Shown here: positions 10,204 through 36,738 of the stretch, piece after piece
How positions within the stretch are numbered: position 1 is the first letter of the stretch
How the letters are laid out: every line of letters begins with the position of its first letter
Program-made: the position numbers and the translations under genes
Notes under the pieces: model-generated
Seen by the model: only the letters and a program-made list of their open reading frames with translations
Databases searched by the model: none
Told to the model about the DNA's origin: nothing
Source of the DNA: Macrostomum lignano
Lineage: Eukaryota
Length of the DNA: 64,000 bases
Assembly (NCBI GenBank): GCA_002269645.1
Contig: NIVC01002247.1
Span: 62,001-126,000, forward strand
Reading direction: 5' to 3'

Positions 10204-10217
10204 GTTGCTATGGCAAC
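10204..10217. promoter_or_regulatory. Possible RFX X-box overlapping the start codon of the giant gene
   Basis: GTTGCTATGGCAAC differs by one base from the palindrome GTTGCCATGGCAAC. Confidence 0.3.
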
Positions 10218-13200
10218 CAACGGTGACACAGTGTGGCTGCCTACCGATTACCACGAGCGACTAAAGGTGAGCGAGCAATGGAACTTAGGACAGGGAGGGA
10301 GGCGGTTGACAGGGCTGACTGTGCTGACTTCCCAAGTACCTCGCGCGTACATCTTGCAACTTGCCCTGTCTCGGTAGTTGGTGAGGAAGTTCTACGAGTT
10401 GTTAACAAGTGTCGGATTTCTCCAACAAGGCAAGCAAACTTCAGGCGTGAGAATTCTCAGCGCGATGGTGTCGCACCTCTCTCTCCCTCTCTCTCTTTTC
10501 GGATTTCCGTTGCGCGCGTGTTGAGTGAGGTTTCTAAGCAAAAAGCATAGGCAAGAGTCTTAGTGAATGACTCAGACTGGTGTAGCACTTGGCTTAAGCA
10601 ACGCAAAAGCATCAGCCTATTGGCGGTTTGCAAATTGGTCAGGTGAGGAGAATAAGTATAAAAAATTGCCGCAGAGAATTAATTTTACATTATTCATTTA
10701 TGCCCCTGAATTCTGTCGCTGAAATTCACTGCAAAGGTGCAGTTTGTACTCATGTGGGCGCAAACAATGAATTTATTATTGTAGCAAAAGAGTCCATCGC
10801 TTTGCCCCTACAAAATCGTGTGGGGGATGCCCCCACTGGGATGCCCCGCCGACACGTGCCTGCGGATCGCTTGTTAGTAAGTGCAAGCAGTGCCCACCCG
10901 CGGCTTCTTTTAGAGAGTAGAAAGAGTATCTAGCTGAGCTCATGAAGGCGCTTCAGCCACGAACTCGGCAGAAGCAAACAACGCGACGCGGGAACAACTT
11001 ATGAAGACGGTTTGAGTTTAGCGAAGGGCCCGCGAAAGACAATGAATGAACGAATGGATCGAGAGACAGGGGGCCGATGGAATGCCAGCCCCGGTGGGGG
11101 TGCTTTGGGCGAATGGAGAGGCAAGCCAGAAAAGCAATGCTCTCAGCACAATTTACCAGTGGGGTGGGGTGGGGGGTGGAGAGACATTGTTTACGCGATT
11201 TCGCAGTCGAATAGCAAGAAAACTTGAAGCAAAGGAATGAGAGAGGGTGGGGGGGGGGCAGAAGCAGAGCCGGGGGTTGGAGAGTTTTGCACTATCAGAG
11301 CAGAGGCAAAGGTGGCCAGCAAATATCAGAGCCGGAGAGAGGTCGAACAAGCACCTGAAGCCGCCGGAGCTCTATAGGAGTGGCAGAGCCAGCGAAACTG
11401 CAGACGCAGAGAGCACTCGTCCACCCCTTCGCCCAAAGTCGCATAATAAATACTTTAATGCCAAGCACTTGCTTCCATAATAAGCTGGAGTAAAAACTCA
11501 GATAAGCATTTTTATAATAGCTTGGATTTTGCTTGTGTATATGAGACTGTGAATGCGCTTTGCAGATAGCAAGTAGTACAGCTGATTAAATAGGTTATCT
11601 TTGATGCTCCAAGCCTGTAAGCGGCTTTTCTTGATATAATACTTAGTGAAGCCAATAGCAGAGTCGAGCAGCCAGCCATGCTGAAGCTGGCCGCCAAGAG
11701 ATCTGCTGACTCAGCCTCTCTGTCGGATGATGCGGCCGCTTTGCCCAGTGTCAAGTACTGCCTGTGGAAAAAGGTAACTTTGCTGGGAAGCCACCAAATG
11801 CTGCAGTTTTCTTGGAAACTGGAAAGATTGAATAAGACTTTGCCTCTAAATATCGCCAAATATTTATCCCGAGTCTTCGAGTGCTCAGTCTAAAGCGAGT
11901 GCTCAGTCTAAAGCGAGTGCTCAGTCTAAAGCGAGTGCTCAGTCTAAAGCGAGTGCTCAGTCTAAAGCGAGTGCTCAGTCTAAACTGAGTGCTCAGTTTA
12001 AAGCGAGTATATTTATTTGAACTCGGTGCTAAGTGCTCATTCTAAACAAGCGCCCAGTTTGGTCTCGGTGTTGCCAACAGTTCTAGAAAAAATGGCTGAC
12101 TTTCAATTTCGACCTTCACAGCATGCCCGAAGCCAGGCATTCAGGAATTCAAGTAAAAGCTTTGGGCGAGCAGTCGAGCAAAGAAAAGGAGCTGTTTTCT
12201 CCGAAATATGGCGCCTTGGCCAACTTCAAATGCGCAGTTTGAAAGCACTTAGCATGGCATCACCCTGCAGGATTTATGCATTTCTTTTCTGGGGCGTCGG
12301 CCAAACGGTACAAATTTGGACTAAAATGGCACACAAGTTGGTTGATACACGGCCTGCTAAGTCACTTCTACGTGACCTAAATGTAGTTCTGCATACCCGA
12401 GCACTAAGAGATGGACCGCCCCCCCCCCCCCGACTCAGATGCTCACCTGAAAGACAGCGCGGTGGTCTCGCAGTGCCATTACAGAGCAAAGCGGTATTAA
12501 AGGCAAACACACTTGCAGGTCTGAGTGGCCGCGTCCCCATTATTTCCATAAATTTTGCTGGGAGAGAAAACAGAGCAAAAAAAGAAGAGAACAAAAAACC
12601 CACCGCCGCCGGCCTCGCCAATAAAGAAAAACTTTCTTTAGGCGCAATTCGCCTTAGAGATATAAATTGGTCGCTTACCCGATGAGGTAGGGCTGGCTGT
12701 TCTGAGCAGACAGAGCTGAGATTTCCTCCCGAAGTCAAATTTGAAATGAGACAGAGATGGTCCTGGTAAGGCTGGCTTACTGAGTCGGTTTTGTTGCTGT
12801 CTTTTTTCTGCAACTAATTTGGGCAATAATCGCATCCACTCACAGGGAACTCAGTTCACTTACGACATACCGGATGGTCTTATCGAGGGCGACTGCGTGG
12901 AGATTAAAGGAATTCTGTCGGGTCACAGGTGAGTCTCGGCCGAAGGTATTCCATATTCACGGACACGCAGACTGCTGATTAGCTTAGCTAAACCTTGCGA
13001 TGTCCCTCCCAGACTGCTGATCAGCGTAGCTAAACCTTGCGATGCCCCTCCCAGACTGCTGATCAGCATAGCTAAACCATGCAGTGTCCCTCCCAGACTG
13101 CTGATCAGCTCAGCTAAACCATGCAGTGTCCCTCCCAGACTGCTGATCAGCGTAGCTAAATCTTGCGATGCCCCTCCCAGACTGTTGATCAGCTTAGCTA

Positions 13201-36600: not shown

Positions 36601-36738
36601 GAGGTGCTGGGAGAGTGTGAAGGGAAAAGGGAGAGTGAAAAGGGAAAAGGGAGAGTGTGAAGAGGTGGTGGGAGAGTGAGAAGAAGGTAGGCAGTGTGAT
36701 GACTAACCATGCAGAGTAAAATCCGTAGAGCGCCGTAG
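10210..36738 (+). CDS. Giant galectin-like / AHNAK-like repeat protein (~5,319 aa, 15 exons)
   Basis: Exons: 10210-10266, 12846-12928, 13819-14029, 15449-15662, 15821-27261, 27750-29041, 29625-30605, 31000-31088, 31247-31460, 31880-32278, 32367-32483, 32774-33285, 33699-33903, 34003-34122, 36715-36738. All junctions are GT-AG with matching phases. The total is 15,960 nt after restoring 1 nt at ~21787. A TGACTAAC branch point precedes the last exon and AATAAA lies at 36993. Confidence 0.75.
11530..11800 (-). pseudogene. Possible decayed hAT transposase C-terminal dimerisation remnant
   Basis: WW...[11 protein letters not shown]...FSMAG...RL...LI loosely follows the hATC pattern WW..YP.L...A...ASS...FS.AG...R.RL. 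Weak, by eye only. Confidence 0.3.
11878..12006. repeat. 18-bp minisatellite (CGAGTGCTCAGTCTAAAG) x ~7
   Basis: Direct tandem copies in intron 1 of the giant gene. Confidence 0.9.
12970..13800. repeat. 42-bp minisatellite x ~20 (intron 2)
   Basis: Unit CTGCTGATCAGCTTAGCTAAACCTTGCGATGCCCCTCCCAGA; produces the 14-aa periodic ORFs on both strands. Confidence 0.95.
14150..15395. repeat. ~26-bp minisatellite (TCTAGTCTAGTCTAACAACAGTACAA) (intron 3)
   Basis: About 48 tandem copies. Confidence 0.95.
15821..27261 (+). CDS. Exon 5: 11.4-kb AHNAK/periaxin-like repeat exon
   Basis: ORFs 15784-21801 and 21804-27275 are joined by a 1-nt deletion. Repeats such as [25 protein letters not shown]...PDVDVD resemble the AHNAK KGPK/FKMP/PDVD motifs. 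Acceptor ttccag| at 15820 and donor |gtaagt at 27262. Confidence 0.85.
27750..29041 (+). CDS. Exon 6: acidic 10-aa repeat domain (xxELDVE(L/V)SG, ~30 copies)
   Basis: Open frame 27761-29062, acceptor tttgtag| (phase 1) and donor GAG|gttagc (phase 0). Confidence 0.75.
29625..30605 (+). CDS. Exon 7: S/A-rich and poly-Q/K disordered linker
   Basis: Open frame 29631-30743 with phase-0 acceptor catatag| and donor CTG|gtaacg. Confidence 0.65.
31000..36738 (+). CDS. Exons 8-15: four tandem galectin-like domains (CRD2-5)
   Basis: CRD2: [22 protein letters not shown]...[10 protein letters not shown]...[18 protein letters not shown]3: LPYSEEFP...IQLDGK...[18 protein letters not shown]4: [15 protein letters not shown]...[15 protein letters not shown]5: LPYFNQFP...IAINDAAV...IRHVMIDG...VTSVEF. 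Confidence 0.8.
31469..31848. repeat. (GACA/GATA)n microsatellite (intron 9)
   Basis: About 95 tetramers. Confidence 0.97.
32567..32740. repeat. 39-bp minisatellite x ~4.5 (intron 11)
   Basis: Unit GAACTGCAGCTCAGAGCTGCTGCCCAATCACAACAGGGT. Confidence 0.9.
33298..33690. repeat. (TAC)131 microsatellite (intron 12)
   Basis: Pure trinucleotide run lying between gtgagcgctaac and tatttcag. Confidence 0.97.
34745..36685. repeat. Purine-rich ~20-bp two-unit minisatellite (intron 14)
   Basis: Mosaic of GGGAGAGTG(T/A)GAAGGGAAAA and GGGAGAGTGTGAAGAGGTGGT. Confidence 0.95.

Follow-up and report, generated by a model that had tools for sequence, protein, structure and literature searches.

Whether galectin-type domains and an AHNAK-like repeat array can belong to one and the same gene is the question raised by a 64,000-nucleotide stretch of the Macrostomum lignano genome (assembly GCA_002269645.1, contig NIVC01002247.1, positions 62,001 to 126,000 of the forward strand), referred to here as the window. 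A first-pass annotation, made from the sequence alone, had proposed a giant galectin-AHNAK chimera at this locus and had stated that no such fusion was known; the latter statement held, since none was found in the literature searched, and queries on galectin and AHNAK, Macrostomum and galectin, and Macrostomum and AHNAK yielded nothing relevant. According to the present analysis, the + strand between positions 10210 and 37515 probably carries a genuine multi-exon M. lignano gene, whose product would consist of one galectin-type domain, an AHNAK-like spacer and four further galectin-type domains. The proposal of a single gene combining these elements is borne out by two protein database fragments and by a continuous paralog model, while one junction in its middle, between exons 5 and 6, is inferred from splice signals and phase.

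The gene model was rebuilt from the window on the + strand, where 14 exons join with matching phases and all introns are GT-AG. The spliced model shares 97-99% of its residues with M. lignano entries in UniProt. The entry A0A1I8GPI7 (380 amino acids (aa), partial, named 'Galectin') is 97% identical and aligns ungapped, with 369 of 379 residues matching, to a path through the 5' untranslated region (5'UTR), exon 1, a candidate exon 1b, the first carbohydrate-recognition domain (CRD1) and the first 1.3 repeat units. The entry A0A1I8GPB3 (825 aa, partial), which starts inside an acidic decapeptide array and has no start Met, aligns ungapped to exons 6, 7a, 7b and 8 to 14 and to a further exon at 37486, with 815 of 825 residues identical (98.8%). 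Because both protein models were made apart from the window, all junctions except that of exons 5 and 6 are independently backed. At this remaining junction, a GTAAGT donor meets a pyrimidine-rich AG acceptor, with phase 1 on both sides; the TAA that follows within four codons of the exon-5 donor (27262-27275) would end any read-through of this donor at once. A protein database search whose query included the exon-5 tail and ran across into exon 6 found no protein covering these parts.

Restoring one base in exon 5 gives a product of 5,321 aa, without any other stop in 5,321 codons, with a mass of 577.6 kDa and an isoelectric point of 4.68. Neither a signal peptide nor a transmembrane segment is found in it, the N-terminus being hydrophilic (maximum KD19 1.21), which agrees with what had been annotated for the signal peptide. 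Within the N-terminal 613 aa, Pfam detects no PDZ domain, only the galectin domain and spurious repeat-driven matches. Public annotation splits this gene into unnamed fragments and lists its paralog as 'hypothetical'.

At the 5' end, the ATG at 10210 is the first after an in-frame stop at 10069-10071, and the 5'UTR extends to at least ~10093; A0A1I8GPI7 translates the UTR too. Exon 1 (10210..10266, +), which contains the start codon and 19 codons, ends in the donor AAG/GTGAGC and is contiguous with A0A1I8GPI7. The same entry includes, without a gap, the 46 aa (...CLWKK) of candidate exon 1b (11636..11773, +), which was absent from the earlier exon list. In the window the exon 1b donor AAG/GTAACT is canonical and AT rather than AG precedes 11636; the window copy may include this exon, as A0A1I8GPI7 does, after exon 1 and before exon 2. 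CRD1 is encoded by three + strand exons (12846-12928, 13819-14029 and 15449-15662) with phases 0-2-0 and exit phase 1, and its junctions match A0A1I8GPI7. It aligns to the entire Pfam galectin profile PF00337 (positions 1-132 of 132) with 41.5 bits and E 1e-10. When used as a query in a word-index protein search, CRD1 gave no match, a false negative, since A0A1I8GPI7 contains it.

The AHNAK-like array occupies exon 5 (15821..27261, +), which is 11,441 nucleotides (nt) long and encodes 53 units followed by a unique, basic tail of ~190 aa rich in S, K and R; A0A1I8GPI7 covers the join of exons 4 and 5 as well as the first 1.3 units. Anchored on the motif KMPSFG, 36 of the 53 units measure 75 aa and 16 measure 50 aa, both being built from 25-aa modules, and Tandem Repeats Finder (TRF) reports periods of 150, 225 and 375 nt. 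The repeat region consists of 24% D, 18% V, 17% K and 12% P. At the DNA level the units are 95-97% identical to each other, and they are, judged by this identity, recently tandem-amplified. Variable sites fall on codon positions 1, 2 and 3 in the ratio 12/4/22 among the 75-aa units and 8/2/16 among the 50-aa units, whereas the other frames show no such pattern, and this skew by codon position is consistent with an exon 5 frame translated under constraint.

Exon 6 (27750..29041, +) encodes 29 acidic decapeptides at 27846-28746 (TRF periods of 60 and 150 nt) and an acidic unique part; its donor, GAG/GTTAGC, is weak, and the exon 6-7 junction matches A0A1I8GPB3. Exon 7 (29625..30605, +) is composed of basic and S-rich, Q/K-rich, and S-rich parts. 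A poly-Q linker had been annotated in this region. The Q-rich segment is indeed encoded in exon 7, at 29898-30419, but in A0A1I8GPB3, which reads ...SASATP/RNRHSSFF..., it is spliced out as a GT-AG intron. As this 522-nt stretch has GT and AG ends and a length that is a multiple of three, and is removed in the A0A1I8GPB3 model, it may represent an alternatively retained intron. A short motif around 29700-29900 in exon 7a, next to the basic patch, is seemingly shared, by eye only, with residues ~770-800 of the paralog P0082 (cf. EKKASALDGVYRVVPV) within linkers that are otherwise unrelated, and this shared stretch may be a conserved linear motif.

The C-terminal galectin-type domains are encoded by exons 8 to 14 (31000-34122, +). 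CRD2 (31000-31088, 31247-31460 and the start of 31880-32278) scores 54.5 bits against PF00337 and CRD4 (within 32774-33285) scores 29.6 bits, so that, together with CRD1, three domains lie above the cut-off of 22.1 bits. CRD3 (the rest of 31880-32278 and 32367-32483) and CRD5 (the end of 32774-33285, 33699-33903 and 34003-34122) fall below it; the C-terminal block as a whole reaches 102 bits. The 0-2-0 phase layout described earlier for CRD1, CRD2 and CRD5 is correct on the rebuilt exons. CRD2 matches the N-terminal CRD of the Toxascaris leonina galectin with E 5.5e-12. A colinear BLASTP alignment of CRD2-3 with CRD4-5 (E 8e-17), together with the pairing found by hhalign (CRD1 with CRD2, 94%; CRD2 with CRD4, 96%; CRD3 with CRD5, 91%; CRD4 with CRD5, 64%), argues that this block is a duplicated pair of an N-type and a C-type CRD. 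An AlphaFold 2 model of the 552-aa CRD2-5 block, computed from a six-sequence alignment, has a predicted local distance difference test score (pLDDT) of 71.9 and contains four all-beta sandwich blocks of 10-11 strands. Foldseek ranks the tandem-repeat galectins, namely that of Toxascaris leonina, galectin-8 and galectin-9, first among the PDB structures matching this model (E ~1e-13), and individual CRDs of galectins superpose on the block with TM-scores of 0.8-0.9 at ~2 Å. From profile comparison and predicted fold, CRD3 and CRD5 are also classed as galectin-like, so that all five domains announced earlier are retained under this name.

Sugar binding is a separate matter. Of the seven canonical beta-galactoside-binding residues scored (H, N, R, N, W, E and R), CRD2 keeps four, namely R, W, E and R, when aligned with a nematode galectin, and CRD4 keeps one when aligned with galectin-7, while none is kept in CRD1, where the HMMER alignment to galectin-3 is weak and below significance (E 0.012). 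Neither an H-N-R nor a W-E-R motif is present in CRD3 or CRD5, and the Arg and Trp of CRD2 are not conserved in the paralogs. The five domains are therefore best termed galectin-like, and their predicted lectin activity is doubtful.

The 3' end of the gene most likely corresponds to an exon at 37486..37515 (+), which lies beyond the end coordinate first given for the gene, follows a CAG acceptor in phase 0 and encodes TAQLFSTRN before the stop. A0A1I8GPB3 ends in ...EFEGK/TALLFSTCN, with seven of nine residues matching, and the paralog C-terminus reads ...AATPSCCIN. The last of the 15 exons originally listed, at 36714-36738 (SKIRRAP, then stop), finds no support; it splices in phase as one of several options, and no homologous protein has such a C-terminus. 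The other 14 are confirmed with the phases given for them. Should the exon-14 donor be read through, the protein would end in VSLSPIC..., with a stop at 34201-34203 and an AATAAA at 34452; this alternative was also considered and is less likely in view of the homologous C-termini.

Evidence that one gene unites these parts also comes from paralogs. A HMMER scan of 1.84 billion representative sequences with CRD2-5 as query returned, as top matches, an 825-aa protein 99% identical to it and proteins of 58% and 34% identity, all from M. lignano. These species matches led to the rejection of a fish origin, which the AHNAK-like repeats and the microsatellites had suggested. The GenBank paralog PAA47915.1 (1,637 aa, cut short by the end of its contig) is a single model running from CRD1 to CRD5. 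Its CRD1-like N-terminus is 35% identical to that of the window gene (E 2e-20), in an alignment that crosses the boundary between CRD1 and the linker exon (cf. EPELIVPKKFRKQ), and its CRD2-5 block is 54% identical, while its Q/K/S-rich linker of ~1,000 aa has no similarity to the window linker. At two paralog loci, L001 and L002, the exons are colinear, on one strand and in the same order, with all three CRD1 exons present at L001, and DNA similarity between paralogs is restricted to exons. A third paralog (34% identity) has a long acidic and S-rich region ahead of CRD2-5. The window gene shares with PAA47915.1, L001 and L002 the colinear order of CRD1, linker and CRD2-5, common intron positions and a short C-terminal exon. 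From these gene structures, the '1+4' layout, in which the linker is long, of low complexity and quick to evolve, is the conserved architecture of a small family so far found only in M. lignano; outside this species, the CRD2-5 scan retrieved ordinary galectins, fish CRD arrays, one spider protein and one snail protein, none with this layout. Because PAA47915.1 combines the 1+4 layout with an unrelated linker, the AHNAK-like array can be regarded as a lineage-specific linker expansion, and most likely it expanded inside a pre-existing galectin linker. The contrast between an unrelated linker of ~1,000 aa and a 53-unit array, with conserved heads on both, illustrates cleanly how a linker can change in length through tandem amplification in nature.

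In addition, the first CRD1 exon is unusually similar between the window (12846-12928) and L001 (6575-6643), with 23 of 27 aa and 85.5% of nucleotides identical, compared with 35% aa identity over the rest of CRD1. Such conservation suggests a specially constrained surface or local gene conversion.

Several observations weigh against this interpretation of the locus. No transcript or protein model was found that bridges exons 5 and 6 or extends over the entire array. The assembled sequence at ~21787 reads CCTGACCCGAC, compared with CCTGACCCCGAC or CCTGACCTCGAC in 22 sister copies. Among the domains, CRD3 (13.3 bits) and CRD5 (18.4 bits) stay under the PF00337 cut-off and match only its last third; the AlphaFold 2 prediction for CRD1 with two repeat units has a pLDDT of 33 and is unusable as a fold model; the Foldseek matches can be assigned to the CRD2-5 block, not to single domains; and the counts of sugar-binding residues rest on weak pairwise alignments. 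Finally, every functional statement about the protein is an inference from its architecture.

The gap at exons 5 and 6 leaves room for two or more genes, one encoding CRD1 and the repeats and ending at the TAA at 27262-27275 and a separate one encoding the acidic array and CRD2-5, in which case the chimera would be a splicing fiction. That the UniProt entries are separate fragments, that nothing found spans exons 5 and 6 and that read-through of the exon-5 donor terminates immediately would fit such a division. However, both fragments break within repeat arrays, which are typical assembly breakpoints, and A0A1I8GPB3 lacks a start Met; the PAA47915.1 model is unbroken over all five CRDs, and colinearity holds at each of the two paralog loci; and the exon-5 donor is strong, with matching phases. 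A division into separate genes is thus decidedly unlikely. The frame break in exon 5 raises a different doubt. It comprises a 1-nt deletion in a C run followed by a premature TAA at 21799-21801 (21780..21801, +, compared with the 22 sister copies); the broken unit has a spacing of 224 nt instead of 225, and the product of the literal assembled sequence terminates after residue 2,181, so the single uninterrupted frame of ~5,319 aa claimed at first does not exist in the assembly. If the deletion were real, the locus would be a pseudogene or null allele, yielding at most a 2,181-aa CRD1-repeat protein or a target of nonsense-mediated decay. The deletion and stop are present in the assembled sequence, and near-identical extra copies in M. 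lignano could compensate for a lost gene; A0A1I8GPI7 is only 97% identical to the window. On the other side, a change from CCCC to CCC in a 97%-identical array is a typical long-read consensus error, no further stop occurs in the 5,321 codons after the one-base repair, and the downstream exons are 98.8% identical to A0A1I8GPB3. Since a homopolymer has changed length within so uniform an array, a consensus error in the assembly is probable, and an inactive copy is unlikely.

Whether the rod is AHNAK in origin is a further point, because the array could be truly homologous to the repeats of vertebrate AHNAK, AHNAK2 and periaxin, as an ancient bilaterian or acquired module that recombined with galectin domains. 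The window unit has in common with them the ordered motif KGPxFKMPSFG...KGPKVxGPDVDxD; its identity to fish AHNAK-like proteins is 31-37% in single comparisons (37% with E 3e-16 for a Poecilia 'AHNAK-like' entry, 31-35% with E 1e-14 for an unnamed protein), its Smith-Waterman scores lie 10-13 standard deviations above those of residue shuffles, a single giant exon encodes the array, as is true of AHNAK, and unnamed sequences of environmental eukaryotes contain repeats of a similar kind. These z-scores overstate homology, however, because shuffling erases the periodic pattern of low-complexity sequence. Moreover, there is no PDZ domain, the units of 75 and 50 aa are made of 25-aa modules, compared with ~128 aa in AHNAK, and an unrelated paralog linker in the homologous exon, combined with the 95-97% identity among units, points to a young, local expansion. 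A repeat-only database search retrieved unnamed environmental proteins and no named AHNAK, a negative that is untrustworthy, as the search also missed the 97%-identical A0A1I8GPI7. True homology is accordingly improbable. Of the 'AHNAK-type' label, the motif resemblance stands and the family assignment does not: the likeness is best read as a real resemblance of motifs rather than membership of the AHNAK/periaxin family, and is probably convergent, or a reuse of a simple amphipathic D-x-D-x-K-G-P strand motif, rather than orthologous. An exported multivalent lectin without a signal peptide, which would cross-link glycans in mucus, matrix or adhesive secretions, is very improbable as well. Galectins are secreted unconventionally, multi-CRD proteins typically cross-link glycans, and CRD2 retains R, W, E and R; but sugar-binding residues are kept at 0/7 positions in CRD1 and 1/7 in CRD4, CRD3 and CRD5 have neither motif, the Arg and Trp of CRD2 vary among paralogs, and non-classical export of a 578-kDa protein would presumably be unprecedented.

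Proteins with AHNAK-like repeats were also seen on metagenome contigs (P0097, P0098, P0108, P0109 and P0112), several of them on one 580-kb contig, and one protein of that contig has a FYVE domain.

Under the preferred reading of a single gene with a linker expanded in place, the protein would act as a cytoplasmic double-headed spacer or cross-linker. Galectin-fold heads at both ends would bind partners. Since the residues for binding beta-galactosides are largely lost, with CRD2 alone retaining R, W, E and R, these partners may for the most part be proteins or non-canonical ligands. Between the heads, the charged, proline-punctuated array would form an extended flexible rod that keeps them far apart, with a length set by the number of repeats, so that gain or loss of units could change it quickly. 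Roles as a scaffold, in membrane repair or in the epidermal cortex, with galectin folds replacing the PDZ domain as dimerisation modules, are speculation; if the protein were cortical or related to repair, it would provide a tractable model for AHNAK-like rods. A broader proposal, that an AHNAK-type polyampholyte rod arose or was retained in a flatworm independently of the PDZ head and was capped by sugar-blind galectin folds, is tentative and rather doubtful. If true, it would make the AHNAK rod a portable spacer module with a job independent of PDZ dimerisation, and M. lignano, in which RNA interference and transgenesis are possible, a simple system for testing such rods. That an invertebrate sequence comes so close to AHNAK in its motifs also matters for the question whether rods of this kind originated with vertebrates.

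In nearly every intron of the gene a single tandem array predominates: 42-nt x20 at 12968-13800, 26-nt x48 at 14144-15395, (GACA)95 at 31469-31848, 39-nt x4 at 32569-32740, (ACT)132 at 33296-33692 and 41-nt x47 at 34770-36683. The remaining window is equally rich in minisatellites, which results in long spurious open reading frames (ORFs) on both strands. The gene is closely followed, on the - strand, by an exon at 39811-40311 with a caspase domain match (PF00656, E 3.6e-31) that covers the C-terminal half of the domain. A MACPF-domain gene follows L001 (27788-32285) and L002 (19373-27176) on the same strand, and since the window gene is followed by a caspase exon instead, the flanks of the window gene and the paralog loci are not syntenic. 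Further - strand exons at 46190-51381 encode leucine-rich repeats (LRR_4, E 6e-15), and this region, which also has a weak endonuclease/exonuclease/phosphatase match below the cut-off (E 0.006), looks like a CCR4/CNOT6-type deadenylase gene. An ORF at 57248-58579 (-) has a weak IBR (half-RING) match, likewise below the cut-off (E 9e-4), ahead of a translated PGYPIVV minisatellite; it may be an exon of an RBR-type ligase that borders on a repeat.

Among known systems, the closest relatives by architecture are the M. lignano proteins PAA47915.1 and PAA52624.1 (BOX15_Mlig025793g1 and Mlig013397g1; 'hypothetical protein'), which have the same 1+4 layout and exon order and a similar short C-terminal exon. 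They differ in having neither AHNAK-like units nor the decapeptide array, and two linker exons in place of the three of the window gene. Tandem-repeat galectins, such as galectin-4, -8 and -9 and the Toxascaris leonina galectin (PDB 4HL0 and 8YZQ), provide the best sequence and fold matches and share the tandem of an N-type and a C-type CRD as well as the lack of a signal peptide. In contrast, they have two CRDs joined by a linker some tens of residues long, and their sugar-binding residues are intact, whereas the window protein has five domains, a linker of ~4,400 aa and mostly degenerate sites. The layout of one domain, a rod and four domains is undescribed in the literature searched and is a variant of tandem-repeat galectins, a concept that is stretched by a 578-kDa protein in which galectin folds flank ~4,400 linker residues.

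Loss of sugar-binding residues from a galectin fold is likewise found in GRP/LGALSL (PDB 3B9C and 5IT6, its structures being among the fold matches) and in GRIFIN, which differ in being single-domain proteins of ~170 aa. The statement that galectins have one or two CRDs, made in the first-pass annotation for canonical galectins, is too narrow. Four-CRD mollusc galectins exist, and the giant galectin arrays of fish, exemplified by the 3,214-aa Anguilla protein XP_035239585.1 with 23 matched stretches, resemble the window protein in carrying more than two galectin domains per chain. Their CRDs are close-packed, without a repeat rod between head groups. The eel, catfish and sucker proteins retrieved here (P0003, P0004, P0006 and P0008) are 2,000-3,800 aa long with up to 23 galectin stretches and are pure CRD arrays. 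AHNAK, AHNAK2 and periaxin, for their part, resemble the window protein in a very long, charged, proline-punctuated array encoded in one giant exon, in a size of ~0.6 MDa and in the motifs KMPSFG and KGPKV-GPDVD. Their units are longer, their C-terminus binds annexin A2/S100A10, and their N-terminal PDZ head mediates dimerisation (PMC7072810), whereas the window gene encodes no PDZ domain and places galectin folds at both ends.

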